The translations under genes were made by a program, and so were the position numbers. Of a stretch of 64,000 bases of DNA, positions 23,628-64,000 are shown piece by piece. Source of the DNA: Anthoceros angustus (lineage: Eukaryota > Plantae > Anthocerotophyta); NCBI GenBank assembly GCA_010909165.1, contig MU008164.1, positions 1,736,001 through 1,800,000 on the forward strand, given 5' to 3'. Position 1 is the first letter of the stretch. The number at the start of each line of letters is the position of its first letter. A model generated the notes under the pieces. The model saw nothing but the letters and a program-made list of their open reading frames with translations. It was not told the origin of the DNA and ran no database searches.

Positions 23628-26048
23628 TATGTGCATTGACTACCGAGGCCTTAATTCATTGACTAAGCGGAACACTTTTCCTCTACCTCGTATTGATGAG
23701 CTTTTGGAGGGATTGGCTGGTGCTCGGTACTTCACCAAACCAGATCTAGCAAGTGGATATCATCAGATTCGTATTGCTGCAGGGGATGAGGAGAAAACCG
23801 TATTTAATACACGGTACGGCCACTATGAGTGGCTGGTTATGTCGTTCGGGATGACAAATGCGCCAGCATCCTTCCAGACTCTTATGAATAATGTATTTCA
23901 TGGCATGATCAATCGAGGGCTGCTTGTTTATCTCGATGATATTCTCATCTATGGAGCTACCCGTGAGGAGCATGACCAACGCTTAAGTGAAGCGTGATAC
24001 GCGAGCTCATCATCTCTATGTCCAAGCTCAAGTGTGAATTCTTGCAAGAACGCTTGGAGTACTTAGGGCACATTATTGATGCGAAGGTATCCGTAGACCC
24101 GCTAAGATTGGTCATTAGGGATGGCCGATTCTCGGCAAGTACACGATGTCGAGCTTCCTCGGTCTTGCATCGTATTACCGTAAGTTTGTTTCACGGTTTG
24201 CTCATGTGGCTGCCCCTCACCCAACACCGCTTGAGCTTTGGACTTGGGGTGCTGCTCAAGATAATGCTTTTCATGCTATCCAGATGCTTTGGTGATCGCC
24301 TGTGTTGGCATACCCAAATCCGGCCTTCCCTTTTATTGTTATGGTGATGCCTCCGACCTTGCCATCGGTGCGGTCCTTCAACAAGACCAAGGCCAAGGCC
24401 GACCGATTGCTTACTTCTCATGAAGTTGAAGGGTGCCGAGTTGAATTGGACAACGGTGAAAAGAGACTTTAGCTTAGGTCTTGGCTTTAAAGACATGGCG
24501 CTGCAAGTCGGAGATTATCGGGACTCTCATACGGATGCCGATGCCCACTGCTTTGCAAGCCCTTGACTGGTTCTGTGGCGGGATGGTCTTCTTTGGTATC
24601 GTCACCGGCTCTTCATCCCTCAGGTTCCCCATATCCGTCGGGCTTTGATTTCTGAAGCCCACGACGTTCCATCTGCAGGTCATCAAGGTATAAGTCGGAC
24701 TACTTCCACTCTCGATCGGCTCTATTTTTGGCCTCACTCAACCAGACGTTTGAGATTATGTCCTCCTCTCGTAACTCATGCCAACAACAAAGCTTATCAC
24801 CAACGCCTGCTGCTCCAACCCTTGCTGCCTCTTTATTGCCTTGGGAGCAAGTCACACTTGACTTTATAACCGGATTGCCTCGCCGCCGGGCTTTGATGCA
24901 TTGCTGGTCTTCACGGATAAGCTTACCGTCAAGTGCTCCTTGCCCCACTCATCGAGACATGCTGTGAAAGCAACGACTTATTTTTGAAAGTAGTTTATCG
25001 TGCCCATAGCCTCCTCGCTCTCTTGTGAGCGACCGTGATTCAGTTTACTTCCCGCTCGGCAAGCACCGTGGTCTTGGCACCAAGCTGTATGTCTCGCCTT
25101 TCATCCTCGATGATGGTGCTACTGAGCTAGCTAATCAAGTTTTAGAGGATATTCTCCGTGCTTATGCGTGCACCAAGCTCGGTGGCGGACTTTCTCCACC
25201 TCGTTGAGTTTGCCTACAACAATGCCCCTAATGCCTCAACCCGAGTTACTCCATTCTTGTTCAACAAAGGTTTTCACCCTGACGCTTGCCGCTTGCCTTC
25301 CGCCTTGTGTCCCCGGCTGTAGATTTCCTCACCAACGTGTCCAGATTGAGTAGGCTCGTCGCCCATGAAGCCCAAAACCGCCAAGCCACCGCCAATCATC
25401 GCTGCGTCCTCAAGAATTTGCAGTTGGTACCTATGTCCTGGAAATTTGTCCCTTCACGGATTCGTAAGATTTCCCCTCATTTTGTTGGTCCTTACCATAT
25501 CCTCCGTCGCATTGGCCTGGCCTATGAGCTTGCCCTTCCCTCGAATCTCGCATTCACCCTATCTTTCATGTTTCCTTGCTCAAACTTTTTAACGGCTCCC
25601 CACCTTTCCGTCCCAATACATACGTGGTCCGCATATGAAGTGAAGAGCCTTCTCCGCCACCGATGTGTTCGCCATCGGTATGAATTTTAGTGCTGTGGAA
25701 AGGTTTCCCCATTAGCGATGCCTCTTGGGAACCCTTGCCAACCTTTCTCGCCTCTCGACCTTCTTAGTGTCTATGCTCGTTATCATCACCTACATCTTCC
25801 GGCCGAGGCGAAGCCTCTTCCACCGGGGTGAGTTGTCACGGATAAAGTTTGATAGCGCTTAGTCTTCCGCAATTAGAGGCAGGATAATCCGCTGTTTGCT
25901 GTGATCACGGCGAGGCTACCACCATAATATGTGGCATGTACTATGAAAGCCCCGTGCATAAAAGCCCGGCTCCCTTACTAGTAGACAGTCTCTCTTGGTA
26001 CAAGTGTACTCCTACTTGCTCCCTGTTTGCGAAGTCCGGCTCATGACA
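23625..26048 (+). mobile_element. Chromovirus-type Ty3/gypsy retrotransposon, 3' half (RT, RNase H, integrase, chromodomain, 3' LTR)
   Basis: LRMCIDYRGLN...YLDDILIY; HDVPSAGHQG; PWEQVTLDFITGLP; chromodomain YEVKSLLRHR...LWKGFPISDASWEP. The 5' part is missing. Confidence 0.92.
25834..26048 (+). repeat. 3' LTR of the chromovirus (215 bp)
   Basis: TGTCA...TGACA termini, preceded by a short G-rich tract. Confidence 0.75.
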
Positions 26049-34231: not shown

Positions 34232-37200
34232 TGTGGAACGAAGACTTTTGGTCACCCAAGACGCGGCAGGAGAGACTGACGCGTAGGATGGGTAATGGTT
34301 GTTCAGGCAGGTAGGTAGTAGGTAGGTCGATAGCAACAGGTAGGAAGCTGGAGGGACGTCCGAAGGAAGTTCGGGCCTTAACTGAATCGGCGTTTCGGTC
34401 CGGTAGGAAGTAGGAGTAGATAGGAGCATCTATAGGCATGATAGGTTCCATAAAGTTCCTTGGACCATGGGAAGTAAGAATATTCGGGAGTAAGAAGTTC
34501 CTTGGCCTTTGAAGTATTCAGGTTCTGCATGGCTATATATGCCAAATAGGGCTAGTTAAGTTGTAAATAGAAAGTAGCTGCAGGAGTTTTGGACCGGACA
34601 CATGGCGGCCATCCGGGAGGAGCGCAATTAAGGCAGATTTGCATGTACCGCAAACTCGGTTAGCTGTGGTTTGAACGGGCGCCAGCGAACCGCAGTCAAG
34701 GCGAGGGGAGTAAGTGGAGTTGCGCTCGAAGGAGGAAGGCGGCAGTGAGCCTACCGATTGCGCCAAGGCAAGTCGAGGGGAGTAAGTGGAGTTGCGCTCG
34801 AAGGAGGAAGGCGGCAAGGCGAGGCGCGAGTGGAGGCGCCAAGGGAGGCGAATGTTGAGAGGCGCCGAGGGGAAGAGCTTGAAGGCTACCGCATCAAAGG
34901 CGCAAGGTGGAGAAGTTGCTGGAGGGGAGATTGAAGGGGCCAAGGTCACCTCTTGGTGGTTGCGCTGAGGCTGACGAGGAGCGGAAACACTTCCCTTGCT
35001 GTCTCTCACCCAAACCACCACCTCTTTGCTCTCCACTCTTAGCCCGATAGATTACTTTCCAAACTCTCCAATTTTGCTATCCTTGTGTGTGCTCCCCTGC
35101 GATGGTGAAGATAGTGAGGACGGGAACGGGATACGCCCACGGGAGGAAACCTCCGCCACACCGCCCACAAAGGGAAAAGGGAAGAAACACCCACCCCGAA
35201 GTTCGAGTGTAGGCCGCCCAAATTTCACCTCGAGATTTGAGGCGCTCGAGCGCGCGCCCGAGATGAAGATGGAATGGTCAGATTTGGTGCCTGGTGGCAC
35301 TTTGCCCCGCCTTGGTTCGAGTGTGCGCGACGAATGCGAGTGACCAAGGCGACGGCCAATTCCGAGGATGCGACAATCAAGTCATCCCGGGATGTGGAAG
35401 GTACATTTCGTGGATACGATTTGATACCTAAGCCCACAAGGGAGGGATCATTCCGCAGCCTCCAAGAATCGATCCCGAGGAGGTTATGAGTATGTTCCTA
35501 CGACCAAAGGAGGAAGTATGGTCGCAAGGCAATGGCTGGAGGATCTCTTTGTTCAAGGAGCGGAAGTGGAATTTATTCGCCAAGATATGGCTGACTAACG
35601 GCGCAGGAAGACGACTGGAAATTCCCATTTAATGATGATATATGAGATGTCCTGTGGAAGTTGGTGGATTGGGCCACCATTCTCAGTATGAACAAAGCGG
35701 TTGACCGAAACCATTTGGTGATGGAGGGAGCAAGAATCGCTTTGTCTCTACCTTCCTCGACACCTATATCGAGGGAGGAGGTTCTTACCGACGAGGAAGA
35801 AGCCAAGATAGAAGCTACTCCGTGAGGGTGGTGGAAGGAGAGCCATCACCGCCCTGTGAGGATGAAGAGGGGCGAGGCCCCGGGCAAGAGACCGCCACGC
35901 CCGCGAACCAACATGAGGCCTCGTGGATCGTGAACCCAACAAGAGAAAGGGAAGAGGCTATAGAAGAACCTCCTACGGAGGAAGGAGGAAAGGATACGAG
36001 ACCACCTACCGAGGGTTGAGGATTGGTAGGCCGACAACCAAAGGGGGAGGAATGGAACCTCCTACCAAGGGACCTGTGGAAGGATGGAGGACCTACGGTA
36101 GGAACTTTACCTCCTACCAAGAAGTAGTAACAGCAAGACTGATGGAGGCGAGAAGAACGCCGAGGGCAGACCCACGCACCAACGGGAGGAGTGGAGGAAG
36201 TGTTTTGAGAACGCCGCATCCTACAAAGGGTAGTTGCCGAGAGGAAGTGGGCGCAGGATCTATGGACGCCCTAGTGACCGTGTCGGAGGTGGCCAAGTTC
36301 GTGCTGAACTTCGAGACCTACGAAAGGAGCCGGAGGATGCCGAGAAGAAATTGAGAGGAGCTGAAAACCACCTCCGAGAAGCAACACTGCTAGATCCGCC
36401 AAAGAGCGACAGATGACCACCAAGTTGGTGAATGTGGGAAATGATTGACTGTGTCTTAGGACAGAGGCAAAATCGCCAAGAGGCCGAGGAGTTGGAAACC
36501 GCCAGAAGGAGGCGAAGGAAAGTTGGAAGCTACCTAGCAAGGGTAGGACACATCGAACGCAGCAAGGAGGAGGCAAGATTCACCGCTAGCAAGGCCCTGA
36601 GACCTTGAAGACGAGAAGGACCTCCTACGAAGAAGTTAGTTGCCATGGAGCAACGGAAGGAGCATTACAAGGAAAATACGACTTGGTGAAGGAACGACAA
36701 GGATGGGACAATGTGACCAAGGGTCACAAAGAGGAGCTTCAGACACGAGAGAACTTTTGGAGCAACAACGAAGAAGGCCGACGACCTTACCCACGCCTAT
36801 GAGGAGGCAAGGAACCGAAGGAAGTTTTGATGGCCCAACGATCTTTGGAGGGTCTTCGTGTCATTCGAGGGAGCAAAGGGCGATCACGCTATAGTGAAAC
36901 ACATGGCAATGGAAGCCATGGAGAAAGATAAGGAGATTGGGAGGCTTGCCCCGGAGTTGGAGGGAGCGATAGTGGAGAAAGAGGCCGCATTGGTAGGAGT
37001 GACAACAGCCGGTGGGACGAAAAGGCCATCCCACTAAGGGTCCGCATCATGGACGACAAAAGAAGGAGAGTGGTAGGGTGGCGACCTACTACAACAACCT
37101 CCTAGAAGCGATTGAGGAACGCCATGGAGGAAGACGAAGAAACGGACCTCACCGCTCGACAAGTGGAATGGCAGCCGAGGTCAAACTTTGAGTTGGTACA

Positions 37201-44688: not shown

Positions 44689-46310
44689 TGTGGAACGAAG
44701 AATTTTGGTCACCCAAGACGCGAGAGACCGACGCGAAGGATGAATGGTTCGTGCAGGTAGTAGGTAGGTCGAAGTGTAGGAAGATGGTAGGGACGTCCGG
44801 AAGTTCGGACTTAATCAATCGCGTCGGGTCCGTAGAAGTATGGGTAGATAGAAGCATATAGGCATGATAGGTTCCAAAGTTCCTTGGACCATGGGAGTAG
44901 GAATATTCGGGATAAGGAAGTTCCTTGGCCTTGAATTATTTAGGTTCGATGGCTATATATGCCAAAGGGCTAGTTAAGTTGTAGATGGAAAATAGGCAGG
45001 AGTTTTGAACCGGACATGGCGCCATCGTGAGGAGCGCCATTAAGGCGCATGTACCGCAAACTCGGTTAGCTGTGGTTTGAACGGGGCGCTTCAAACCCGC
45101 AGGCGGTACCGAGGGGTGGAGTTGCGTCAAGAAGGAAGGCGGCGTGAGCGGCGCCTCACGATTGAAGCGCGCGAAGCCGAGAGAGCGCGATCACAAGCGA
45201 ACCAAGGCAGGGCGCGCGAAAGTGGAGGCGTGCCAAGGGGCGAGTGAGAGGCGCCGAGGGTGAGCTTGCAAGGCTACCGCATCAAAAGGCGCAAGGTGGA
45301 GAAGTTGCTGGAGGGGAGATTGAAGGGGCCAAGGCCACCTCTGGTTGTGTTGAGGCTCGCCGAGGAGCGCGGAAGCTTCCCTTGCTTGCCTCACCCAAAC
45401 CACCACCTCTTTGCTCTCCACTCTCTTAGCTCGATAGATTACTCCAATCTCTCCAATTTTGCTATCCTTGTGTGTGCTCCCACCGTGCGTGATGGTAAAG
45501 ATAGTGAGGAGGGAACGGGTACTCCCACGGGAGGAAACCTCCGCCGCCACACCGCCCACAAAGGGAAAAGGTAAGAAACACCCAATTCCCGAGTTCGAGT
45601 GTAGGCCGCCCAAATTTCACCTCGAGATTTGAGGCGTCGAGCTACGCCCGAGATGAAGATGGAATGGTCATTTGGTACCTGGGTGGCACTTTGCAGAGCC
45701 CGCCTTGGTTCTGGAGTGTGCGCGATTAATGAGAGTGACCAAGGCGACGGCCACCTGAGGATGCGATCAAGTCATCCCGGGATGTGGAAGGTATGGCATT
45801 TCGTGGATACGATTTGATACCTAAGCCCACAAGAGGGATCATTCCGCAGCTGCCTCCAAGAATCGATCCCGAGGAGGTTATGAGCATGTTCCTACGACCA
45901 AAGGAGGAAGTATGGTCGCAAGGCAATGGTCGGAGGATCTCTTTGTTCAAGGAGCGGAAGTGGAATTTATTCGCCAAGATATGGGACTAACGGCGTGCAA
46001 GGAAGACGTGCAGGAAATTCCCATTTAATGATGATATATGAGATGTCCTGTGGAAGTTGGTGGATTGGGCCACCATTCAGAAACAGCGGTTGCATCGAAC
46101 CATTTGGTGATGGAGGGGAGCAAGAATCTTTGTCTCTACCTTCCTCCTATATCGAGGGAGGAGGTTCTTACAAGACGTGGAAGAAGCCAAGATAGAAGCT
46201 ACCGGTGAGGGTGGTGGAAGGAGGCCATCAGCCCCGAGGATGAAGAGCCGAGCGAGAGACCCCGGCAAAGACCGCCACGCCCACAACCAAGATGAGGCCT
46301 CAGGATCGGA
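44689..46310 (+). repeat. 3' LTR of element B, truncated
   Basis: Collinear with 34232-35932, then broken by an inverted 84-bp piece. Confidence 0.88.
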
Positions 46311-46839
46311 AACCCTCCGGTAGGTGGTCTCGTATCCTTCCTCCTTCCACCGTAGGAGGTTCTTCTATGGCCTCTTTCCCTTTCTCTTGTTGGGAATTGA
46401 TCGATTGGTGGACGACATCTACCATAACATCACTGGCTTCAACATCGGTTTACATGCTTAAAGTCGCCTGCCTCCGACGCCTCGAATTGGTTTTTTTCGG
46501 GGTAGTGCGGGTGAGTTTTAGAGAGAATCGGCCTTTTGGCCATTATTTTACCCAGATAGTAAAATTCATTACTATAGTAGAAAACATGCCAAGTGGGGTG
46601 GATATGATCTACCATCAAGGTGGAAAAGCAGCACTAGAGTAGAAAACATATGACCAAGTGAATACCAGGTGCGTCTAGTAGAAGCTCATTCTAGAAATCC
46701 CACCAAAATCGCTAATCTGACAAAAACATTTTCTGTTAAATAATATTCATGCGGATCCAGGATATACAAAAAACCAACAAAGAACCCTTTTCTTTGCAGA
46801 GTTTCCTGTATATCCAGAATTGCATGAAATACGAATTCA

Positions 46840-49800
46840 ACTAATGAAGAGTAAATACCAGTATAGAGTGAACTCTGCTTCAACAAGAAACCTACAAACA
46901 AAACCAAAATTAGCACCCAAACCGTAATTACGCTGCTACTAGTAAACACTAAAAATAAAAAACATTGATACTCACCTTATTTTGGGAAATTTACTGTACA
47001 ATTATACAGATTGAAAATGTAATTTTCACGACCACTTGGCTTGATTGGTACTTACAGCATTATCATAATTGGCAATTGATGAAGGCGAGGACTTGGGCGA
47101 AATTGACCATCTTCCGCAAGGTCACAACCTAAAACAACCATTAATTTTCAATCTAGTAAACTTAATAAAAGCATAAAGCTTACCGATCGACGGATTTTCG
47201 CGAGATAGCTTGAAATATCTCGAGGCACATCCTTCTCTTGTCTTTCCCACGTAATCTCCGAACCTCTTGCTGCTCTTTCTGCTGCTTGATTTCTCTTGAT
47301 ATATGCTCTTGTCTCCTCTCCGCATTTCTCCGCCTCTGAATCTCAAGGGCTTTCTCTCTTTGCTTAGAGACTCGTAATTCAACCGCCTCTGTCTCTCTAT
47401 AAGTGCCTCCAAATCCTTTTGCCTGAAACTCCATTTCTTTCAATTTGTCATTCTCCAATTCCGTTCTGAGATCTGCAAGCCGCTCAAAGCCACTTACATT
47501 TCCATTTGCGATCACAGTGCAATATATCGAGGTGCTACCAGCCACACATCTGGTTAACGGATGGATCACACTCACTCACAATGCCCTCCAACGGAGGGCC
47601 ACCATCAACTTCCCTCGGTGTATCAATGTTGAAAATGAGGATGATAGCACCTTACACTAGTCGAAGGATCCATCGCCAAGAAGAACACAATCGAAACTCC
47701 AAAATGAATGAAAACAACAAACAAAGAATCAACCTTGTCAACATATGGAATTTTAGTAGAACACCACATGGTTGGTGCGCTAGTATCCATCTGGATGCCT
47801 TGGCAATGCTTTAAGGTGCACGCCGGTAAAAACAAAACCATGATTAAAAAACTAACATGGCGGACTACAAAGCAACTTCACAATACCAACGAACTTCAAG
47901 ACAGTGGACCACATGGTGCGGAAAAACGATTCGGTCCAACATTGTTCGTGCCTTTCATGATGAATAACGGGGTGGCCACGGGAGGAAAGACCTACAAATC
48001 AAGTCGGGACACGTTTTGACACAAGTCCCTACATACTTGATACAAATCTCAAACACTTACATTACTAACGTGTTGCACTTGCAAGGCCGATCTTGGTGAC
48101 TCGAAAATACTATTTCGAGTTACATTCAACCGTTGACGGAAGAACACCCTTAAATCATCCGCATCCGATTGAGTTCTTCATTTAAAAGCTCCGATAAGAT
48201 CGCGTTCACCGAACAAGAACTCTTACTGTTGCTGTTTTACCGAGCGGTCATATCTCAAAACATATGAGAACGTTAGGACGAGCATACAAAGACTCAAATG
48301 TCACAAGCTTTCACAACATATTACCTTGAAAATCCAGCATCCGTTTTATGGCGGTCACACTTCTCCCGGAGGGCACACAGCCATCGTCAAGCGTGTAATC
48401 ATCGTTACACGGCTCTTATTGGTGTAGTAGCCAACAAGCCCAGCTTCACCATGGTCTTCATAAATCTTGCATTCCTTTTGAAACACGAAGTTTTGCATAC
48501 CAAGCCGAACAAAAACAAGCAGTTAGTAAATAGAAACCACAAAACTCAAGCCCAATAAACCAAAAACTTACATTGGATCTTGGGTTATCAATGGTTGAAT
48601 TGAAGAAACCCCTGAATTGACAAATTCTTGTCATGTCCGAGACCACTTGGGAGAGTGATCAATATGACTTTAAAGGTTTCGATGGCGTCCTTTTCGTAGA
48701 TCTTGACCTTTTGACGGAAATGCTCACTCGGTAGTTCTTCATATCCACTTTGTAATTTTTGAATGCCGTTCTTCCGCAAATGAAGGAGCTCAATCTGATA
48801 CATCAAAACATCAAACAAACAAAAGACTACACCCTCGAACAAAAGGTCCTTTTGAATCGATGCAAATGAGAAGTCCCTAATGAGCGGGTTATGTAACTCT
48901 TCACCACCTCGAACCCCAAACTGGTCATGCAAAATATGCACACACCAACAATATAAGCATAAGGGCTCCAGGTTTAAGAGACCATAAATGAACAATCAAA
49001 GTGCACCCCCAAAACCAACAATATTACCTTTTCTGAGCCCCCCGCCCAAATGAGCATTGATGATCCCTGTGTGAAAGAATCAGTCGCTCATCATCATCAG
49101 AAATCAACTTCACCTCTTTTCGACATGACACAATCCCAAGGTCCTTGCTGATTTTCATGGACGCAACCAGCGCTGCCTGGGCCCCATGGAAAATTCCATG
49201 AAACAAGTTGATCACCGGAACATCAGAACCAAGCCGGCTTTGGTTCAGGATGCACTTCCTTGTTAAAATCCGGTTAAACCCACGAAAGAAAGACATCAGC
49301 CTGCACAAGTGAAGATCAGCAATCAGTCATGTGAAAGGAAAGTCAGAACTATCAAAATCAACAAGTAAGAAAACATCACTACTTACGTTTCTGGAGAAAA
49401 TCTCCTGTCCTTGATTCGAACTTGATGGAAAAAGGTATCGAATAAGATTTAGATCCTTGTAAGGAATATCCTCAACAGCGATATCCCATCCCCGACCACT
49501 CACTTTCATAAAGGCCACGAGGCGACTTGACACGATTAGCTTTGACCTATCCTCCCCACCACTCAAAGCATCATTCACAGCTCCCTCGACGGGTCAAATC
49601 CCTCTCGAAAATTTCTTCATCATCAATTTCCTCCATACCCATGGCAAAGTCATCTTGGACCACTTTAGCCTCTCAAACATATCGAGCACTTCTTGATCGG
49701 GGATGACTCGGTCGGGAACCAGCATGCGCCGACTGTAAAGCATCTGTTCAACCCACGGCACACAAATTTCTAGACTCTACAGGCTTTGGCGGCTCACAAC

Positions 49801-50185
49801 CATGGGATCGTCGTTATCAAGAAATCATTCTCCCCACAAACCTGGACCCCTCTCTCGGACCTTTGGGACATAGTTAGTAATCTCCGCAAGAGGACCTTCA
49901 ACCAATGCCAGTCAGTGTCCACCCTTCTCCTCTTGCACAAACTCACACGTCGAGCATCCTTCTTGGATGAGAAGTGCCTTGGCGGTTTAGGAATGCCTTT
50001 TTGGAACTAAATATGTTCCTTCACTGCACCAAGACACCATCAACTTTACCATCATCCTGCGGTGGATGAGTTGCGATGTGGAGGGCGGTGACTTGACACT
50101 GTCTAGTGTGCGGCTTAGCCATGACTTGACGGGGACCCTTGCTTCTTTCCCGGTCCAAGAGGCCCGGTGGGTTTCCAGGTGCCAT
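46840..50185 (-). pseudogene. Spliced tyrosine recombinase gene, copy 2
   Basis: MKISKDLGIVSCRKEVKLISDDDERLILSHRDHQCSFGRGAQKR; FGVRGGEELHN; YTNKS; HKTDAGFSR|YDRS with an intact AG acceptor. Confidence 0.8.
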
Positions 50186-50399
50186 CGCAAAAGCAGTGAT
50201 CAAAACACAAAAAAACTTGAACTAATGAACTTGCAAACCAATATGAAAAGACTTACATGGTGAATGCTTTCAAATGAGAACTTCTGAAGGGTCTAAAAGT
50301 TGATTATAAAACAATCGAAAAAGAAGATAGGAGACACATCCTTTGAATCTATACATTGTTAAATTTTGATCCCTCCACTTTTAAGTTAGAACGAAACTC

Positions 50400-52525
50400 C
50401 TTTTAACAAAACCCCACATACTTCCTGAAACACTTTTTCAATAATATTGATAGAAAACACAACAGCCTTGATCGATCAGACACTGAAGAAACAGATTTCA
50501 CACTCGGCAAATAGTTATCACGATTCACAGACAGACGAATTAGAATGTTGGAAAACCCTTCACGATGACAAATTTGCCTACACACAAAGATTTAGTGAGG
50601 TAGAAGTAGAATAAACAAAACAAAAAGGCAAGTGTAAACATCTCTTACTAAAATCACGAATTCACCCTAAGAATTTTCCTCAGCTGTGCAACAAAACAAA
50701 AAGAGTTAACAACAAGAGATGAAACACATAGAGCGGGCTTAAAAAGACAACGATTTATCATTGACAAGCGTGATAGGATGATAAATGTAAAATACAAGAC
50801 AAATCGATAACACCTGTTTACCAACACGTCTTCTAGAAAATCTTGAAATTACTTCTGCGTCAACGACAAAGACAATGAAAACTAATACAAGCTCAAGAGA
50901 ATCTAAGCGGCATTTTCAAAAGCATCTTCATACGATTAAAACAAGGTTCATTGGCATACCAAACAAAATCCCAAATATGTCGCCACATAGACCGAACGCA
51001 TCCATGAGGAAAAAGAACACACGAGGTAAGAACACACAGGGAAAAACTTTGTGACAACACACTCATAAAGGCGTGAAAAACAAAGGTGATGGCAAGCAAT
51101 CAATCGGACTAAGCGGCGAGACAAAATAGTGCAAAACAAAACCAAGCCATGGAACAACGGCAAAGAGACAAAAGTCACTTGACAAAACGAACAAGTTATA
51201 GCAGCGTACGAAGGTGAAAACAAGCGAAGGTGAAAGAATCGCATAAACAGACCTAAACAAAACTTAGCTTGGAAGTAACACAAGAACTCTCGAGACAAGA
51301 CCCGTGGGATTTCAAAAAACGACAGAACGACGATGGCGTCAAGCAACAAGTCAACAAGAGAGCAAAGCAAATCGAAACCAAGCTTATACAAGTTAAAGCA
51401 AAACACATGAGCGTCACGCAAAACAAGAACACAGAGGTCGCGAGACAAGAAAACAAGCGAGATGCGGTACCAAGCCATGACACACGACAACAAGCGAGCA
51501 GAGAAAAGGTCTTCCAACAATCAAGCAAGCGAGTTAGAAGGTCAAAGAACAAGAATCACTCATGGAGGACATGACAACCTTCAACTAGATGCAACAATAT
51601 GAAGGCTCAAAAGCGGGAGATCGCGTTTTCACAAAAAGCAAGCGAGACTCCATACAGCATCAACGGAAACAAAATAAACAAGACAACCTCGACGGCAAAT
51701 CAACTAGCAGCTATCTGAGCGTAAACCAAATACCATCATAGCAAAGTAGTCATTCCTATGATTTAGGAATCGCATACAAAACAACATCGGGCGAGATCGA
51801 GAAAAGCGATACAAAAAGCCACGTAAGCGGTAGAAAAACACTTTAAAAACAAACAAAAACCACAGATACCCGGGCGCGAACACCACCGCGTAACAAGCAA
51901 AACCGCACAAAACAACAAAACAAAAAGAAACAATAGGCGAGAAACAAATAACGTAAGCGCAAATGGAAGCAACTTCAAAGAAGGCAGGCCTTAACCACAA
52001 ACCGAAACCTCAAATGCCAATCAACCTTGGCCTTGAGCAACAAAACAACACGGGCAAGGACACCGTGACCCCGGACGAGCAAACCCTTGGCCTTGAAAGA
52101 ACCAGGCGGCAACACCTTGGCCTTGGCGACTGTCGAGACCTTGGCCTTTGAACGAAGGCTGGAAAGGGCCTTAGCCTTTCGAAAGGACCTGAAAAACGCA
52201 TTGGCCTGAAAACTTATACAAAGCCTAGAAGCCTAGAAGCCTAGAACACCTTGGCCTTCAAAAGAAGGCTACAAAACAGCTAAGCCTTCGGACCGAAGCC
52301 AGAAATCACTTTGGCCTGCGAAACTAGAACTAGACAACTCATGGACTTCGGAGCAAAGCCTGGAAGCATGCACAAGGCATAGGCCATGGCCCTCTGAACA
52401 CGGACACAGCCTTGGCCTTGAAGCAGAGAAGACCTTGGAAACTAAAGATGAACAAGCAGGCTTGGACGACGCCACCTCGGCCTCCAAAACACAGATGCAA
52501 AAGACCTCCGCTTTGGAGAAGCCAT
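50400..52525 (-). other. Putative spliced gene or 5' exons with AAGGCCAAGG (KAK) repeats, inside copy 2
   Basis: ATG GCT TCT CCA AAG CGG at 52525, repeated CCTTGGCCTT on the plus strand at 52025-52420, then T-rich intron-like sequence on the minus strand. Product unknown. Confidence 0.4.
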
Positions 52526-52580
52526 TTATATAGGCCCAAACCCTAAACACTCTCCCTCTGGCGGCGCCACTCTCTCTCTA
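52523..52580. promoter_or_regulatory. Candidate bidirectional core promoter (TATA-like, site II GGCCCA, telo-box AAACCCTA, CT patch)
   Basis: TTTATATAGGCCCAAACCCTAAA at 52525-52547, followed by a CT-rich tract, at the point where strand composition flips. Confidence 0.45.
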
Positions 52581-52599
52581 CCAAAATTTGAATTAAGAA

Positions 52600-55500
52600 C
52601 CTAAGATTCGACGATTCCAACCCTCGTAGGTTCGCCATTGCCCGCCTCTCAACCAAAACCTAGGTTCTTGATTCCAAACCTAGCCTAAGCACCAAAACCT
52701 AATCTCCGAACCCTCGTGGCGTAACGAACCTGCTTCAACCCACGGCCACGCCGCAGCATCGAACCATCTAGAAGTTTCAATTTTGATGCGGCACACCTAG
52801 GGTTTCTTCATACGCCCAACACGCGCCGCTGCTCGCGTAGGATGTGCGGCGCTGCAGGTTACGATCGGTGTTTGACAGTGCCTTTTCAAGTTTGGCTCGT
52901 CCTCGGGAAGGTCACGGCGCCTCGGCTCCACGTTCCCTTCATCTCACGCCCACCATGCGTCGTTTGATGCTTCTTTTGATCGCATAGTTTCTTGATTCAC
53001 CTAGGTGGGTACAATTTGCACTCTATCTCACAATCGATCCGCGTCTCTTTTCTCATCATGGCATCCAGCTTAGCTCACCGCCCATAAGACAACAAGAAGT
53101 CTCTTTTGGCGTCCTTCGTGACGACGTCAAGCCCACTAAGGTAGTGTCGGTTCTCCTTACTTGTTGAAGTCCTTTCGCCCACACTATCTTGTGGGCTCTT
53201 GCAACCATTGCTAGTGCATGAGCTAATCGTGAGTTTGCCATTGAAGCCTTTCTCACAAGTATGTATTGTGAAACTCGGACCACGCAAAGACCCTTCAAGT
53301 TCCAACGCCAAAAGGGACCTCGAGACACATTAGCCTACGGTAGACAAGACCTTATTACCTTGGTTGTTTTCCTTTCAAAGTCGGGCTAATGCATCACCCA
53401 AGCTAGCGATGACGTCTTGTCTTTGATCGGCTTGCGATCGGATTAATCTCGGTTGCCTTTACCTAGGTCACAACAACAGACACTCGTTGCTATGTCTGAA
53501 GCCGGTCACCACAAGAACTCCTGCGTAAGTCCTTCCTTCACTCTTGAAGCGCATCACGCATGCAGAATTCTGCATGCCTCCTGCGAGTCGTGCATGGCTG
53601 CAAAGCATGACTTGCCATTTGACTCGGACGCAAGCTGCATCGGCTCGACGTAAGCGTGTGCGAGCTTGGGGCTGCGCTAACGCCTGATCTCAACCAGCGC
53701 TGCGATCGTGCGTACATCCTTTCCTTTCCTTGTTTTCCTTTACTGCGTAATCACCGAATAAGCGCATGCCGTTTAACACGGTTGCGTTTCACCTTGAGCT
53801 TGCATTCTCTGCTTATTTCATCGCTTCAAAAGATTCCGTATCAAAAGCTCCAGTTAAGATCGGCCTCGGTTTTGAATTTACTTGTACGTTCGTCCTTGTG
53901 ATCGAGTTCTAACAAACTAATCACTCGTGTAGACAGCAAGAATCTTGAGTAAGGCGGTCACGCCTCGTCAAGAGAACACATCAAGTGGTCGCGCTACATT
54001 TTCCGTTTTTGTGTAAAATCGAGTTATCAAAGGTTGGTATCAATTTGTTTTCCACCTCTGTAGAAGTAACAATGTGGCATGCACCGCGCATATCTGAAAT
54101 GCAGGCATAATCGCATGATTGCCGCTTGAAGGTATGCGGCATGCACGCAAGCGCGACGCATAGAACTGCGGCACGCGTAGCGCATAACGCGCCACAACGT
54201 CTGGCGGCATGCCATCTTATGGTGACATCAGCGAATATCACCACATGGTGGCGTATCCACTGAGCAACGTCCCTCCACGAAGTCCCACATGCGGTGGCTT
54301 TGCAGTGGCCCTTAGCATGCTTTAGCAGCAGCATCGAGCATGTTGCGGGAACTCGTAGATGTTTCAAAAGTTGAAGCATGAGCATTGTTTGTGTCGTTGA
54401 CGATGCTTTTATTTGAGAATGGTATCCGAGAATGAGAGAAACAGCGATGAAATGGTCGACATCCAAGAAGGTAATGATCATTTTACGCCTCGCTAAATCC
54501 ATTTTAGGTTGATAAATCCATGGCTAAAATGATTTTCTCGAGCGATCACAATAGTAGAGCCAACAAACCTAATATGGCGATCGAACAATCATGTTCCCAC
54601 CCATGGGGATCCAGGATATGATGACAGTGAAGTTGAAATCCCTCTCATTGAGATACGAAAATAGTTGAGAAAGGTAGTACATTGCAATTTCAATTGACTT
54701 TCCTGTCAACATTTCTAATTGGATATATTTGATAGATACTCGAGCACACTATGTTCACATCAATGGACAAAAGGACTTGCGCTCCTTTGCGGATGCTGCT
54801 CAATTGGAAAAAATTAAAAAGGTAAATACTTGATTCAACTTCTCTAGAACTATAGAACAAAATATAGGTATCAAACTTACAATGGTTGTATATGGTTACA
54901 GGATATTAAGAAGAATCTCCGACAATGCTCAATTAGAGTTGGAAACAATGACTGGTCCGTTTCAATGGACATCGGATCTCAATTTTGGAGGTAAACAACA
55001 AACATTTAATATATGTATTTGTTTACATTAAAGTACTAATATATTTGTTTACTGAGTCTTCTTGAACAAGTAGCTGCTAAGGAAATTAAGGAAAATAGAA
55101 GAAATGGATGATAAAATCAACAACACGGCCATCTCACATCGTAATTGCTATTGTATATTTGTAAATAATTAAATATATTTGTAACTAGTATTTACTAATT
55201 AATTCTGTTTTTCAAAAGGACAAAAGAGGAAAAAGGGTGAGTCAAGATAATGCACGTATGGACCATCGAAGGAATTTGTCGACTTTGGAAAATGGATGGA
55301 TAACTTTCGGTATCCACAAGTCTTCCAAGATTTTAAAAATAGATATGTTCCCATTTGGGAACATAGCCTCAAAGATCCAAGACCAATCAATGAAGATGGG
55401 TCGTGACAACCCTAGAGCGACATGGAGATCCGAGAAAAGTAAGTGTTATCGGTTTGTATTGTTTTTAATAGTTTATTTGAATCGGTTGATAGTAGTAATG

Positions 55501-56000
55501 AAATATTTTGTTTTGGTAATGTAGAAAATATCACATTGAAAATAAGGAGCTAAAACCAGACTTGTTGACTCTCATGGAAGATCCGAAACTACAAAAACAT
55601 TCAAAAGGTTAGTTAATAATTTACGTATGTAAACAAGGAAAATATTAATATTGGTATTTACCAAATATGCAAATTCTAAGGTTGATATTTCTTTGAGCGT
55701 CCAATCACATTTCCGTAGTGTGGGAAATCTTCCATTGCCTCACATTAGTGAGAAAGGTATTTAGCAAGATCTTCTTCGACTTGAAATGGAGGTAAAATAT
55801 TAACTCCTCTTTTTGTTTGTAGTTATCGAAGAATCAAAAGGAGTTGTTTGCACTATTTGAGGTTAGTATATCATATTTACAGTGGTGAAATTATATAGCT
55901 ACGATGTTTGACATTTACCATTGCCTGCAGAAATATTCCCGTTTGGACGAAATTTTCGAAATGATTAACTTTCTATCTGGACCGTATAATGAACAAAGAA
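52600..56000 (+). other. Unidentified multi-exon gene remnant inside copy 2
   Basis: Alternating purine-rich exon-like blocks and AT-rich GT..AG introns (54470-55930). A degenerate CCHC knuckle (CYV...GHHKNSC, then GTAAGT) lies at about 53488-53530. Confidence 0.5.
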
Positions 56001-56390
56001 AGAAGTATTACTGAAGGCAGGCGGATCCGAAATCGCGGTGTACACCCCTTCAACGCTGCGGAAGAAAGTTAGAAGAGAAATGCCAAAACCACGAAAGACA
56101 AAGCGTGCAGTAGTGAAAGTGAAAACTACGAAGTGTGAAGGTAAAACTACGAAGTGCGAAGGTGAAAACTCGAAGAGAGAGAAAAAGACTTCTAGCTTGG
56201 GTGCACAAGGCAACAATTCTAAAGATGCGCATACGGACCTCGGCTCGCCTCGATGCAGTCAGTGTGCGTCTCGGCCCCGCCTCGCTCCCTTCGCCGAGGC
56301 GACGCTCGTCGGGCGCCTGCGGCCTAGAACGGTCTCGGCCTAGCGGCCTCGACTGCGTTCTCGGCCGTGGACGCCCGGCGTCGTTCTAAT

Positions 56391-58690
56391 CGTACAAGAT
56401 GGCGCAGTATTTCCTCGACCATCCCATTGGATATGATTCCCGCCGGAACACCCAATGCCGACACTTTTCAATTTCGCCTTTCCGCGTCTTCTTAGGCTTG
56501 GGTTCCACGGTACTCAAAGCGAGGTCATTTCACGGCAAGCGATGGCAACATCCCAAACAAAGCGGGGAAAGGTCATTTTACTTCGATCGCAATATCTTCT
56601 ACTGGCGAATACAGGGTCGTCGGTGGCGGCGGCGGGGTAGCACCCGCCTTCTTTCTTTGGCTTGTTGACAACGGATCGTCATGCATCTCCACTTGGGACC
56701 AAAGCGTGGTGTCCTTCTTTGTTACTTTCCGTGGCTTGTCCTCCTCATATTGGCTTGGAGGTATTGGCATCGGTAGCGGAGGTCAGGGAGCGTGTGCGTG
56801 GGCTGAAAACACCATGCACATTCGAGCTCAATTGGTTCCTCCTCCACAACAACACCGAGTTGGATTTCCCAAGCATCGGCACAGGAAGCCCGACACGAGC
56901 TGGGCTCCGTCCCGTCCGCCTCTTCCACTTGATGAAGCCACGATTCTTTGGGCAGCGCCACTCGGCGTGACGGTTTCGCCCAGACGCAAGGAGCTTTGGC
57001 GATTACGATGGTATGCTCAATTGCTCCACACTTCTTACAGGCTCCGGGATCGTGGCATGGCGAGTTCATATATCTTCTCCAACTCTAAGCGGGTGATATG
57101 AGCCTACATGTTGTTGATCTTCCTCAAAAGGCTTAGACTTGCGTTTTCCTTGATGTGCGCGATTGCATCTCGCTTCTCCTTGCAACTTCTCCGGGATGGG
57201 TGACAAGCTTGGCCGTTTTTAAGTTACGTATGAGGAGTATTTGCCTGCATCAAAATCAGAATCGGACTTGTTAGATGCTGGGGTGATGATGCGAAACCAT
57301 CTTCTTGGGTGGCCGGCGCGCAGACGTGGTTTTGTTCTATCCCGTTCCATGGCCATCTCAATGGCCAGGGAAAGTGTCACAACCTCAGTTTCCATTTTCC
57401 GACTATAGAATTCGTCTCTTAACCCTCAGACGAACCGCCGCTTGACCTTGCTGAGCTTTTCAGGAGTCACATAGGCCAGCTTCTTGACCAGGATACGGGA
57501 TCGCTCAGCATAATCTTCAATCAACTCATGATCTCCTTGGTATAATCAGTCAAGGGCTTTGCTATATATGGAAGGTTGGACTTGAACTTGGTAAGGAAGG
57601 CCGCAGAGGCCGGACCAATCTAATCTATAGGCATCCTCAGGTTTCAAAAACAGCCTCACCTCACCATGAAGCGGGGAAAAGTTTTGTATACTTCTTCTCA
57701 TTTCCCATCATGTGAGTCTTGAGAATCCTGAATAATAAAGTGTTTAGGTTTCCCAAAATCACGCATCATTAATGATAGGATGATAGATAGGGACTAAAAT
57801 TTAGAAGAGCTAGGACACACCACTCGGTCAAGCGTGAGGAGATGAGGATACACTGGTGACTCGTCAAGAACCGTCGGCGCAAGTCAAGAAAGCAATCATG
57901 AGAGGATGGCCATTTGATTGCTTCCCTTACATAAGAGAAATTCATGGACCTACACAAGGAGGCAGGCAATTAAGGGCAGCCACATGTATTGGAATCATCA
58001 AAATACCAGGTCTACTCAAACCTGTGCAGGTCCCGCCGGGGGTGCCATTGTTAAGGTGTATCTGACTTTAAGCATGAACTATGTATCCGGACCTACAGAC
58101 ACATGCATGGGAAGGTAAGGTTACTAGACCGTATTCTTGCTCGTGACAAGATTGTGCCAAATACTGGCAGGGTCACCCTTGACTATCGATATGGCGAGTT
58201 GAACTGAGCGATGGGCGTGCAATGAACCCGATCAAGCGGGCATCGCATACATCAAAGGTGATAGGATGAGGTCCAAGAGGATCTATCTATTGTAATTCAC
58301 AGCACCACAGTCCACTCATGATTACACACAAATGGTTAGATGCCTCCTCGGTCCTTCGTGTCCTTCATACACTTTTCGCACAAGCAATCAAGGTCACGGT
58401 CGAGAATTCAAGAGGCGTGGCTCCAACCTCGATGAGGAGAGATCCTCTCAAGCATGGGCACGGGATACAGAGCTCTCGGCTGTTCTCGTTACTTGCCCGG
58501 CGGGAAAATGGAATACAATTTTTAGGATGTCCAAGGCATGTTTTCTACGCTTTAACTTCAAGGAGTCTTGTAAGTTATGGCCACTCACGTTTTCCCATAG
58601 CTAGTCCTATAGCTCCTGGATGCTCTCATGTCCACGGTACTCATGCTGGCTCTTTCTTGACAAAAGCACAATCTAATCTTCCTCCTAACA
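56391..58690 (-). mobile_element. Remainder of the element A duplicate (gag region, start deleted)
   Basis: Collinear with 6658-9150, except for a deletion/inversion at 57730-57817. Confidence 0.85.
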
Positions 58691-58957
58691 ATATCTATGT
58701 ATTTGTTTGGGTGTCGCTATGAAGTGTCGCATAGACGGCCTGGTTCGACTTCTGTAAGAGTTCCTAAGCGGGAAAGCGACTTTAAATCTTGCTCTTGCCC
58801 TAAAAACATTGAGGGGCGTATCTATGTATTTGTTTGGGTGTCGCTATGAAGTGTCGCATTGGTGACCTAGTTCGACTTCACAGCAGGAGTTTGTAAGCCG
58901 GAGACGACTTTATAAATCTTGCTCCAGGCGGCAACTTCATACCGTGGAGAGTCTCTC

Positions 58958-60817
58958 ATGGCGTCAGTCTCGGGGAAGATGAGATTGTCGACAAATGTAT
59001 CCGCGTGAAGGATGTGTGCAGGAATGTAAGGAATACGATCAGGGATGGGACAATTCACGGAAGGTGCGAGGTCATCGAGCCACAAGGTGCTCTTTGTGCC
59101 GCACATGGATTGGAAAACCCCATTTGCTGCGAGTGTTGGATGGTCGGTTGGCGGAACCGTTGGATCCACACACCTTGGCGATGAAGCCTTTTGTGGAGCA
59201 ATCTCCCAGGAGTATGCATATAATTCGGCGCCATTCGGCATTCGCTCTCCATCGTTTCCAAGACCGCGGTCCTGTTGATCTTTGGTTCAAGCGTATGTGA
59301 CTCTGTGGAGCCTCGACTGCATTTCGGTGTAGAATGCGGTAGACAGCGGTAGCTTCTTTCGAGACGCGAGCTCAAACGCCCTCGAAATCGGGGGAGGAGG
59401 TTCTCCAAGTTGGCTTGTCCTTTCTTCCTCTCAAATTCCAGTCTTTTCGAGCCCGGAGTTCGTTGTGAAGGATGGATTGGTGCATCTTCAAGGTTGACCC
59501 GAAGCCAGCTGCAAGACCCAAGGTTGAAACTCGCGGATCCATGGATGAAAGCGATGAGGAAAAGGAGGAGTGATGGAGCAGGGGATCTTGAGGAGGAGGA
59601 TGAGAGCGATGAGGAGGAGGAGATGGATGGGGATGGGGGCAGGGATGGGGAGGAGGATGATGGGGAAGAGGAAGGCGAAGAGCACGAGGATGATCGGAAG
59701 ACAAAGACGAAGAGGACGAGGATGATGAGGAAGGCGAGGCGACGAAGGCGTGGGCGAGGATGACGAGGATGAGGAGGAGGAGGAGGAGGATGAGGAGAGG
59801 TATTCGACGGCAGAGGATGAGGATATGCATAAGTGCTATCGAGATTATGATGGCGATTGCAAGGCGAAGGTATGAGTTTGCGTTGCCAATCCTATTACGA
59901 GAACATTCAAAGTGCGCCGGGCCGGGCATGGAAGGCGACTTTCGGCTACCGAGAATCACGGAGACTCCGGCTTGAGGTGGAAGAAAGCGGACATTTCACC
60001 CTCATTGTTTTGTGTATGCGGACAGATAAACCAGTAAGCATCTGGTCAAGGATAAGGATAATAGGTGGGGCCACGCTTTGACTCAACCACTCTGGTTTCT
60101 GTGAAAATGCGCTCAAGCGACTTCCCTCGTATTTTTGTGTAATCGGCGAAAATAAAGTGGGGCGCCAGTGGGGCAACTCGATGAACATGCTTGTCTCAAA
60201 AGTGGCCGGGTTATTTGGGATGGCAACCGGGTAACATAAGTATTGACGATGATGGGGATATGGAGCCAAGAGATATCCGAAATCCTTTTGGGGGAGAATT
60301 TTTTGCCGAACAAGGCGACCACGGGGACAGTGGATTTTGGGATTTGGCGGTGGAAAGGAGCCCATACATGTGGCGGAAGGTATCGTTCGCCCATTTGTAA
60401 GAGCTCTTGGGACCCAGTCTGGAGGCGGGCGGTCGGAGGAGCACCTTGTGGAGCAAGCTTGTTGGGTGATACAATGTTCTTCATTATTCTGGCATTGTCT
60501 CCGATGAAGGCGGCTTGTACACGCCTTGGTGGGATACAACATTCCCCACCGAAATGGAGTCTCATTTCCACGAGGCAAAGGCGAGTGCCTCGTGCAGCAA
60601 CTGTGTCTCTTTCGACCGAATGATATGGGTGTTTGTGATTTCCGTTGTTTCAACTCTCTCAAGTGTGTGCTTTCAAGCAGTCAAGTACACACAGTGTTGG
60701 AAGCTCGTCCAAGTTAAATGCGAAATTGAATGGGTGAACCTCGGACCCGGAGAAGTAGCTAAAGGTGTCGGAGCAATCAATTCCGGCAAAAAGGTGCAAG
60801 TAGTTTTGGTTGACAAC
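58958..60817 (+). pseudogene. F-box paralog (duplicate of 9419-11448), heavily indel-disrupted and cut by Crypton-like copy 3
   Basis: Collinear with the 9419 gene (CQECKEYD, RCSLCRTWIGKPH, D/E tract). Confidence 0.88.
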
Positions 60818-63800
60818 GTAAAAGTCGGCGGCCTCTCTGGGGCCTCGGCCGACTAGTTTTTTTTGGTAGTGGTAAATTTTAGAGAGAAGAATTGACCTTT
60901 TGGTTATTATTTTACCCGGTAAAATTCATTACAAGATAGTAGAAAATCATCTACCATCAAGGTACAAAACAATGAACCATACAAGTGGGTAAAATCATCT
61001 ACCATCAAGGTAGAAAATAGAGCACTAGAGTAAAAACATGACGACCAAGTGAATACCATGGGTCTAGAAGCTCATTCTAGAAATCCCACCAAAATCGCTA
61101 ATCGACAAAAACATTTTCATTAAATAATATTCATGCGGATCCGGGATATACAAAACCAACAAAGAAACCTTTTCTTTGCGAGTTTCTGTATATCCGAATG
61201 GCATGAAATACAAATTCAACTAATGAAGAGTAAATACCGAATAGATTGAACTACGCTAGATTGAACTCTACTTCAACAACAATGGAACCTACAAACAAAA
61301 GCAAGCACACAAACCGTGATTAGGTGATACTAGAAAACCGAAATAATCATAGCAAATACTTAGGAAATGATACTCACCTTATTTAGGAAATTGACTGTAC
61401 AATTATACTGATTGAAAACGTAATTTTCCGACCACTTGGCTTGATTGGCAGTTGTACAGCATCATTCTTGGCAACCAATTGATGAATGAGGACTTGGGAA
61501 ATTGTCCGCTTCACGCAAGGTGACAACCTAATAAAATACAACCATTGATTTTCAATGTACGATTAATAAAGAGCATAAGAAAACTTACCAATCTCGACGG
61601 ATTTTCGCGATAGCGATGCAAAATATCTCGACACATTCTTACGCTCTGTTCTCTTTTCCACTGCGGTCTTGAACCTCTTGCTCCATCTGCTTGATTTCTC
61701 TTGATGCTTAATGTGCTCTTGTCTCCTCTCCACATTTCTCCGCTCTGGATCTCAAGGGCTTTCTCTCTTTGCTTAGAGACTCGTAATTCAAGCGCTTTAC
61801 GCCTCTCTCTCTAAGAGCCTCCAAATCCTTTTGCTGAAACTCCAATTCTTTTATCATACTCCAATTCCGTACTCATCTCGGCGCTCAAAGCCACTTCCAT
61901 TTCCATTTGCGATCCAGTGCAACAATATCGAGGTGCTACCACACATTTACATCTGGTTAACCGGATGATGATCACACTCACTATGCACAATGCCCTCCAA
62001 CAGAGGGACCATCCACTTCCCTCGGTATCAATGTTGAAATGAGGGATGAAGGTCTTCCACTAGTCGCAGGATTCACAACCGCCAAGATAAACATAATCGA
62101 AACTCCAAAAGAAGTGAAAACAAACAAAGCGGACAAGAATCAACCTTGTCAACATATGGAATTTCACTAGAACACCCAGTTGTTGGTCTTGTTATCCATC
62201 CGAATGCCTTGGCCACGCTTTCGGAGGTATGTTTGCAACCAAAACATACGATCTCCCACCCGTAACAAGAGACCGGTATGATTAAAACAGATCCAACATG
62301 GCGCAGCAAGGAACTACCAACAGAACTTGGGACACGGTGGAACAAATGGTGCGGAAAACTCGATTCGGTCTTGACATTGTTCAAAGGTGCCTTTCATGAT
62401 GAACAACGGGAGTTACGAGACCTAACACACAAAAACAAGTCAAGACACATTAGTCAAAAAAAAGTCCCTACAAACTTGCAACAAATCTCAAACACTTACA
62501 TTGTTAACTGTTGCACTCGCAAGTGCGATCTTGGTGACTAGAAAATACAATTTCGAGTCACATTGAGGGCAGTTGACGGAAGAACACCCTTAAATCATCC
62601 GATTGATTCTTCGTTCAAAAGCTCGATAGGATCGCCGTTCACCGAACAAGGACTCTTCTGCGGTACTGTTTTGCTTGACGCCGGTCATCTCGCAAACCAT
62701 ATAAAACATCGTGAAGGAACATACAAAGGACTCAAATGTCACAAGCTTTCAAAACATATTACCTTGAGAATCCAGCATCTTTTATGGCGGTCCACTTCTC
62801 CCGGCCGAAGGCACGAGCCATCGTCAAACGTGTAATCATTGTTACACGGCAGCTCTTATTGGTGTAATAGCCAACAAGCCCGGTTGCTTGACCATGGTCT
62901 TCATGAACCTTGACAACATTCCTTTTGAAACACGGAGTTTTGCATACCAAGCCTAGCCAAAAACAAGCAGTTAGTAAATACAAACCACAAAACTTAAGCC
63001 CAATAACAACAAAACTTAAGCCCAATAACAACAAAACTTACATTTGATCTTGGGTTATCAATTGTTGAATTGAACAAAACCACGAATTGACATGATTTTT
63101 GTCGATGAGACCACTTGGGAGAGTGTTCAATGACTCTAAAAGTTTCGATAACATCCCGCGTAAATCTTGACCTTTTGGAAATGCTCACTGGTAATTCTTC
63201 ATGTCCACTTTATAATTTTTAGCCGTTCTTGATACGCAAATAAAAGCGAGCTTAATACGATTACATCAAAACAAACAAAACATACCGACGTCAAAGATAC
63301 AATGAACAAAACAACCAAAACATCTTGAACAAAAGGTCCTCCGAATCTGCGAGAAGTCCCGAGCGGGTTATGTAACTCTTCACCACCTCGAACTCCAAAC
63401 TGGTCATGCAAAATATGCACACCGCAAACAATAGAGACCTCCGTGTTTAAAACCATAAATGAACAATCAAAGTGCACCCCTAAACCAACAATATTACCTT
63501 TTTGAGCCCCCGCCCAAATGAGCATTGATGATCTCGTGTGAAAGAATCAGTCGCTCATCGCCAAATCAACTTCACCTCTTTTCGACATGACACAATTCCA
63601 AGATCCTTGCGATTTTCATGGACGCAACCACAGGACCCATGGAAAATTCCATGGAACATGTTGATCAGGAACATCGAGAACCAAGCCGGCTTTGGTTCAA
63701 GATGCACTTCCTTGTTAAAATTCGGTTAAAACCACGAAGAAAGACATCAACGCAAGAGAGAAAAATCAGTCATGTGAATGAAAGTCGAACTATCAAAATC

Positions 63801-64000
63801 AACAAGTCAAAAACATCACTACGTTTACGGAGAAAATCTCCTGTTGTCCTTGATTCGAACTTGATGGAAAAAGGGTATCGAATAAGATTTAGATCCTTGT
63901 AAGGAATATCCTCACAGAGTATCCCATCCCCGACCCCACTCACTTTCATAAAGGCCACAGACGACTTGACACGATTATTACTTTGGACCTATCCTCCCCA
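60818..64000 (-). mobile_element. Crypton-like tyrosine recombinase transposon, copy 3 (runs off the window)
   Basis: Same 3' terminus as the other copies; GLVGYYTNKSCRVTMITRLTMA and FGVRGGEELHN. The empty site is at 11441-11455. Confidence 0.88.

Follow-up and report, generated by a model that had tools for sequence, protein, structure and literature searches.

In a 64-kb window of the genome of the hornwort Anthoceros angustus (the window is the whole stretch of 64,000 nucleotides, to which all positions refer), the segment 46458-56390 is probably a full-length, dead member of a family of Crypton-like DNA transposons found in non-seed land plants, with an intron-split tyrosine recombinase gene in its 3' 3-4 kb; two further segments would be dead copies of the same family. 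The three copies share one 3' end and differ in their 3' flanks, an empty site exactly brackets the second copy, and another empty site exists at the 3' junction of the third, indicating that they are mobile insertions. The gene of the family is very probably a tyrosine recombinase, as indicated by a chain of homology to intact plant genes that combine matches to the Pfam family Phage_integrase with a complete set of catalytic motifs. These observations bear out the mobile tyrosine-recombinase element proposed in an initial annotation, which was made from the letters of the window. The designation Crypton-like refers to the predicted architecture, which includes neither a reverse transcriptase (RT) nor long terminal repeats (LTRs) nor a target-site duplication.

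Insertion sites and ends of the three copies

Self-BLAST revealed three homologous copies within the window, which are listed here with the features that define their ends and sites.

46458-56390, minus strand: copy 2, a 9,933-bp insertion with both ends defined, no target-site duplication and decayed genes
19575-23626, plus strand: copy 1, limited to the recombinase module in the 3' 4 kb, with its 5' side truncated or rearranged and its 3' end adjoining a Ty3/Gypsy RT
60818-64000, minus strand: copy 3, the 3' 3.2 kb, the remainder lying past the window end
6586-6700, plus strand: paralogous empty site of copy 2, recognized by flank matches
11400-11500, plus strand: paralog unbroken across the position of the 3' junction of copy 3, recognized by paralog comparison
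56369-56390, minus strand: 5' terminus of copy 2, ATTAGAACGACGCC..., unique in the window at three or fewer mismatches (0 expected)
46458-46474, minus strand: 3' terminus of copy 2, ...GAGGCAGGCGACTTTAA, common to copies 1 and 3
56113-56175, unstranded: subterminal tandem repeat of three 21-nt units, about 215 nt inside the 5' end (TRF score, 98)
50327-56368, unstranded: 5' half of copy 2, with no recognizable gene, not common to copy 1 or the compact relatives

Copy 1 aligned with copy 2 over 19621-23603 (plus) and 50326-46470 (minus) at 83%, and with copy 3 over 20471-23628 (plus) and 64000-60816 (minus), also at 83%; the alignment of 46447-49558 with 60808-64000 gave 78%. Alignment of the 3' ends and a pattern search located a common 3' stop in all three copies, ...GCGACTTTA(A/C), past which the flanks were unrelated. 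The self-BLAST and the 3'-end alignment thus agree on the three copies with a shared 3' end that the initial annotation had described. The first letters of the three 3' flanks, GTATGTGCA, GCATGTAAA and GTTGTCAAC, hint weakly, if at all, at a preference for certain targets.

The left flank of copy 2 (46394-46455) matched 6586-6653 and the right flank (56407-57729) matched 6675-8043, each at 85%, and the two flanks lie just 21 bp apart in the paralog. The filled site reads TTTACATGC/TTAAAGTCGCC...GTTCTAAT/CGTACAAG, and the empty site of the paralog reads TTTACATATGC^CGTGACAG. Because the flanks are contiguous in the paralog, the segment 46458-56390 entered as one block, without duplication of any target base. 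Direct repeats of at least 3 bp are absent from the junctions (...GTACG/ATTAG...TTTAA/GCATG...). The 3' end of copy 2 can be written ...GGCGACTTTAA. It is similar, judged by eye from one 5' end, to the 5' end read in reverse complement (GGCGTCGTTCTAAT against GGCGAC-TTTAA), so that the two termini make up a short, imperfect inverted end of about 13 bp. Neither within copy 2 nor at its ends did the repeat search detect long direct or inverted repeats. Copy 2 had been called apparently complete, a description that fits its ends, which are defined, and not its genes, which are broken. A small local inversion lies 64 bp from the 3' junction of copy 2, where the 84-bp segment 46311-46394 is a 94% inverted copy of the paralogous positions 35935-36017, directly after a direct match of 44689-46315 with 34232-35937.

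For copy 3, an empty paralog (8248-11447 and farther on) offers a comparison at the 3' junction (60817/60818) only. The paralogous empty sites claimed for copies 2 and 3 were accordingly recovered at both flanks of the former and at the 3' junction only of the latter. Copies 2 and 3 lie in one orientation, with 4.4 kb between them (56391-60817), in a single copy of a host repeat whose paralog (6654-11447) is empty at both positions.

At the 3' end of copy 1, the frame of a Ty3/Gypsy RT (TLRMCIDYRGLN...YLDDILIY) takes up again (23602-24000), the DNA 5' of the copy is not the N-terminal part of this RT, and no empty site for copy 1 was found within the window. Because the upstream side is rearranged, the start of copy 1 need not be a true end. 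We read this copy as truncated or rearranged; its start could instead be the end of a shorter form of the element. Given the RT directly 3' of copy 1 (23602-24000), Ty3/Gypsy RT sequence may be a preferred target. The three copies had been assigned to three unrelated targets. The Ty3/Gypsy RT was recovered at copy 1; the "gag-protease element" and the "F-box gene" proposed for the other two copies were not confirmed, since the flanking open reading frames (ORFs) had no Pfam match and both copies reside in a single copy of a host repeat.

We found the 5' half of copy 2 a single time in the window. It yielded 65 stop-to-stop pieces with a minimum of 45 residues (50327-56390), none of which matched a Pfam family, with no RT, RNase H or methyltransferase among the results. 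Searches with tblastx revealed no similarity in the window, including its Gypsy pol genes, or in the loci L001 and L004 to L006, and a sequence search of the PDB gave no match. The longest ORF (53984-54523, minus strand; 180 residues) was likewise without a match. A second gene in this half could not be confirmed, as no Pfam, PDB or tblastx signal was obtained. The 6-kb 5' half appears to belong to the inserted block, and we found no evidence for cargo. The element had been described as cargo-carrying, with accessory genes, and as Starship-like, a proposal not supported by a 5' half that contains no recognizable gene, was seen once and is absent from compact relatives. The repeat search and the Pfam and tblastx analyses of the 5' half did support the stated absence of an RT, LTRs and long terminal inverted repeats (TIRs). 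Elsewhere in the window, long Pro/Ser-rich low-complexity coding-like tracts (16700-16970 and 10100-10370) dominated the tblastx noise.

The probable intron-split recombinase gene and its relatives

Searches were run exon by exon, with single exons as queries. The parts of the gene mapped in copy 2 are as follows.

49027-49299, minus strand: N-terminal (core-binding type) domain exon, with a GT donor after ...FGRGAQK(R)
48873-48947, minus strand: part of an exon containing the first catalytic Arg, HILHDQFGVRGGEELHNPLIRDF, colinear with FFVRGNRELYNLLLKD of L004 and present in all three copies
48648-48793, minus strand: Lys-motif exon part, ..FKNYKVDMKNY.. then EHFRQKVKIYEKDAIETFKVILITLP with a frameshift between them, matching SKN...EHFRK... 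of L004 and L001
48324-48530, minus strand: WY...TNKS-R exon, with Lys-x-x-Arg for His-x-x-Arg and a GT donor after ...RHKTDAGFSR
48226-48252, minus strand: start of the next exon, YDRSV..., with the catalytic Tyr; GHRNLKTLGCYDR in L001 and GHRNLKKLGRYDR in L008

The motifs on which the initial annotation had relied (FGVRGGEE, WY, TNKSCR and HK..GFSR, splice, YDR) are thus found in the window. A phmmer search of 1.84 billion representatives with the 94-residue piece 49024-49308 (minus strand) identified two relatives, P0001 (E = 3.5e-7) and P0002 (E = 6.5e-6), which sit on eukaryotic, plant-like metagenome contigs. By tblastn, the N-terminal exon displays 38% identity with exon B of locus L004 over 102 residues. 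Colinearity of the window with L004 extends over four segments, namely, the N-terminal domain, FGVRGGEE, EHFRQKVKIY... and ...YYTNKSCRVTMITR... (52% identity). A word-indexed search with the FGVRGGEE ORF returned no match in its length range. By eye, the C-terminal tail, rich in K/E/R (KALEIQRRR), looked like that of the moss relatives, a likeness discarded because tblastn did not support it.

Plant-like metagenome contigs supplied two intact-looking three-exon genes of the family, at 5606-6454, 6521-6958 and 7217-8392 in L004 and at 7512-9757 in L008. Both contain the complete R/K/K-x-x-R/H/Y motifs, and their sequences make them candidates for an active enzyme. A profile search also assigned the hypothetical protein KC19_VG038500 of the moss Ceratodon purpureus to the family (E = 3e-33). 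Its locus (L007; CM026426.1, about 12.65 Mb on a 110-Mb chromosome) retains the N-terminal domain and the first-Arg exon only and is a fossil. Locus L001 contains at 4991-5440 a pseudogene version of the L008-type gene, with in-frame stops and Gln for the first catalytic Arg (FLIQGNTELH), adjoining ankyrin/PGG-domain genes. Two scans of metagenome loci with alignments A6 and A7 gave pattern matches only and no confirmed relative.

The ordered catalytic set R (FGVRGGEE), K (..KNY..), K-S-x-R, H (RHK) and Y is kept in the window, L004, L008 and P0004. A frameshift interrupts the WY...TNKS-R exon of copy 2, whereas that of copy 1 (21502-21684) is intact. The catalytic Tyr lies nine residues past the His, as in L001, L004 and L008, with a GT-AG intron between the two in the window. 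T-N-K-S-x-R is invariant among all family members (alignment A7), indicating that Lys for His is a family trait rather than a product of decay. The predicted active site of the enzyme comprises Arg, Lys, Lys-x-x-Arg, His and Tyr.

Phage_integrase was the sole Pfam match of P0004 (E = 7.5e-6; 26.3 bits) and of the C exons of L004 (E = 1.2e-4; 22.4 bits) and L008 (E = 9e-4; 19.5 bits), in each case over profile positions of about 82 to 169 of 172, corresponding to the C-terminal half of the domain. A search of the PDB with the family profile returned XerA as the best match (E = 0.056) and the integron integrase IntI4 as the fourth. In the XerA alignment, N-K-S-x-R of the family falls on H-x-x-R, G-H on G-H and Tyr on Tyr. 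The same search with the profile of the fragmentary alignment A4 gave noise only. The language-model neighbors were the DUF3504/QRICH1/ZMYM, DUF3435, Phage_int_SAM and Phage_integrase clusters (scores, 0.96 to 0.97), DUF3435 appearing only as a lower-ranked neighbor, and the ten best family-carrying neighbors of the catalytic piece all share one family or clan. PF11917 (DUF3435) gave no Pfam match.

Decay, abundance and alternative readings

All three copies are decayed, with substitutions of about 12 to 14% between copies and about 90 indel events per 3 kb; their three-way alignment gave 10 to 14% substitutions and 114 to 135 indel events. Every reading frame in all three copies is interrupted by stops and frameshifts. 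The indel/substitution ratio (0.19 to 0.39) is unusually high in every repeat pair across the window, and the indels range from 1 to more than 10 nt, with only about 20% of the homopolymer type. Because the ratio is uniform in all repeat pairs and the indels have these lengths and composition, the breaks are read as real decay. Sequencing error is disfavored as their source on the same grounds, although this is unproven. The indel-rich pattern of the repeat pairs may correspond to a genome-wide mode of decay or to assembly noise. In the four mapped exons, pairwise differences between the copies were about half of those in the non-coding 3' tail, and differences in the exons were more numerous at the third codon position (50) than at the first (30) or second (31), compared to 74, 73 and 66, respectively, in the tail. 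This contrast, together with the third-position excess, indicates that some of the divergence accumulated in lineages that still functioned. In the copies that were read through, a frameshift between the KNY and EHF segments occupies an identical spot.

In a public DNA run (X1, organism A), 635 short contigs matched 46534-50151 with a summed word depth of 100 to 1800, compared to 4 to 8 just outside (46400-46533 and 50152-50400). Organism A thus has the recombinase module in highly repeated form. The fall in depth near 50150 is due either to weaker conservation of the non-coding sequence or to a common form that is shorter.

Several observations weigh against a Crypton-like element encoding a tyrosine recombinase. 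No single ORF piece of the window matched any Pfam family, and every match obtained with the relatives was below the gathering score of 27.1, as expected for single exons lacking the first third of the domain. The suggested check of the family against the Phage_integrase profile yielded sub-threshold matches for single exons of L004, P0004 and L008 and none for the window pieces. PF12012 (DUF3504) was not matched by L004, L008, P0001, P0002, P0004, P0005, P0006 or the window pieces (hmmscan, E up to 10). The initial assignment to the DUF3504 group is thus not sustained, language-model neighbors alone pointing that way. The AlphaFold models were poor, with predicted local distance difference test (pLDDT) values of 54.5 for exon C of L004 and 55.0 for the N-terminal piece, because the queries were single-exon pieces with a handful of relatives. 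In Foldseek, the best match of the L004 exon C model was Cre (3c28; E = 0.41) and nothing was significant; Cre, XerA and integrases crowded the top of this insignificant list for the catalytic piece. VIA Z scores for that piece reached at most 4.3, tied with TrpR, and fold matches of the N-terminal piece are meaningless. The inverted end is read from one copy, which provides the sole 5' end available, and the terminal direct repeats of 4 to 6 bp usual for Cryptons are absent from copy 2, the one complete copy. Circles, excision footprints and transcripts were not observed; the single run guessed to be RNA held nothing, a blank that does not prove the element silent.

It is unlikely that the insertion is composite, with a mobile unit restricted to a compact, roughly 4-kb recombinase module such as that of copy 1 and the moss relatives, and a 6-kb 5' half of unrelated origin, an element or sequence that inserted at, or became joined to, the same site. 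Copy 1 does begin where its homology to copy 2 ends (about 50326-50370), the contig depth in run X1 drops from hundreds to 4 to 8 at about 50150, L001, L004 and L008 share the recombinase gene alone (about 3.5 kb), and the 5' half has no recognizable gene. However, the empty paralogous site misses the whole 9.9 kb as one block, the two ends of which form a short imperfect inverted pair, and the start of copy 1 loses weight as a boundary in view of its rearranged upstream side, where the N-terminal part of the RT is missing.

A 5' half of this length would also accommodate a pol gene, and recombinase-bearing retroelements occur in green algae. A retrotransposon of the DIRS/Ngaro type whose RT/RNase H part decayed past recognition is nevertheless very improbable, since the 65 pieces matched no RVT, RNase H or methyltransferase family, tblastx detected no similarity to the Gypsy pol genes of the window, inverted terminal repeats, split direct repeats and an internal complementary region were not found, and the moss relatives are recombinase-only. 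We give hardly any credence to a large cargo-carrying, Starship-like element mobilizing host genes: the size of about 10 kb and the recombinase gene at one end would fit, but the 6 kb contain no host-like gene or known domain, and captain-type DUF3435 is merely a lower-ranked language-model neighbor. The window is full of duplicated blocks, as it would be if a host gene derived from a recombinase had spread by segmental duplication rather than transposition; since the three copies share sharp ends and are followed on the 3' side by unrelated DNA, and since empty sites exist in paralogs, this origin is scarcely conceivable.

If the family is indeed composed of Crypton-like transposons, the recombinase would excise a circular form of the element. 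Its two ends, ...GGCGACTTTAA and ATTAGAACGACGCC..., once joined, would make an imperfect lox-like inverted pair of the type bound by tyrosine recombinases, and the circular joint would read ...GACTTTAA/ATTAGAACG... Recombination between this joint and a target would then insert the element without duplicating target bases.

Comparison with known recombinase systems

Starships are fungal elements of tens to hundreds of kilobases with a variable cargo of host genes and a DUF3435 captain at the 5' end. The window element resembles them in the location of a tyrosine recombinase gene near one end but differs in its size (10 kb), in the position of that gene (3' end) and in having no identifiable cargo. 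It differs from DIRS and Ngaro elements in that the RT/RNase H gene and the inverted or split direct terminal repeats of the latter were not found in copy 2.

Crypton DNA transposons were reportedly described by Goodwin et al. in 2003. They have been surveyed in animals, fungi, oomycetes and a diatom by Kojima and Jurka in 2011, with termini formed by direct repeats of 4 to 6 bp and an R-H-R-Y catalytic tetrad; sites of tyrosine recombinases consist of inverted repeats of 11 to 13 bp around a spacer of 6 to 8 bp (PMC3212892). DUF3504 CryptonA elements of Glomeromycota fungi are the subject of a 2026 paper (PMC13465315). The window family resembles Cryptons in combining a tyrosine recombinase, encoded by a gene with introns, with the lack of an RT, LTRs, long TIRs and a target-site duplication, and in the DUF3504/QRICH1/ZMYM and Phage_integrase language-model neighbors of its N-terminal and catalytic parts. 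It differs from them by its occurrence in land plants, by a 9.9-kb unit that includes 6 kb of unexplained sequence, by a short imperfect inverted end in place of the 4- to 6-bp direct repeats, and by R-K-R-Y in place of R-H-R-Y, with Pfam DUF3504 unmatched.

Cryptons are not mentioned, and DIRS are excluded, in a review of the transposons of land plants (PMC9033089). In agreement with the initial annotation, which regarded the family as possibly undescribed in land plants, we found no description of Cryptons in land plants, hornworts, ferns, a liverwort or Viridiplantae in the full-text literature, Repbase and subscription journals being outside the scope of this search. More tentatively, and with the odds slightly against it, the family may be an undescribed lineage of tyrosine-recombinase DNA transposons that is specific to non-seed land plants (mosses and this hornwort genome), has Lys for the canonical His and has here grown to a 10-kb, two-part, high-copy element. 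If true, a recombinase DNA transposon that inserts without duplication in bryophyte-grade plants would add a class to the land-plant inventory; land-plant reviews list no tyrosine-recombinase elements (PMC9033089).

The compact plant genes (L004, L008, Ceratodon purpureus KC19_VG038500 and P0004) share with the window gene 36 to 52% identity in colinear exons, the TNKSxR and GH...RY motifs and an intron-split organization. They differ in sharing just the recombinase gene of about 3.5 kb, no counterpart of the 5' half of the window element having been found. If the reading is true, L004 and L008 would be intact candidates for a eukaryotic Cre-like enzyme with a Lys-for-His active site. The fossil copies in the window matter mainly for fixing the ends and the insertion behavior. 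The family differs from Cre, XerA and the phage integrases (PF00589) in being eukaryotic and intron-split, in having Lys for the first His and in scoring below the Pfam threshold; it aligns with them over the C-terminal half of the catalytic domain, with the HxxR box, the G-H pair and the Tyr nucleophile.

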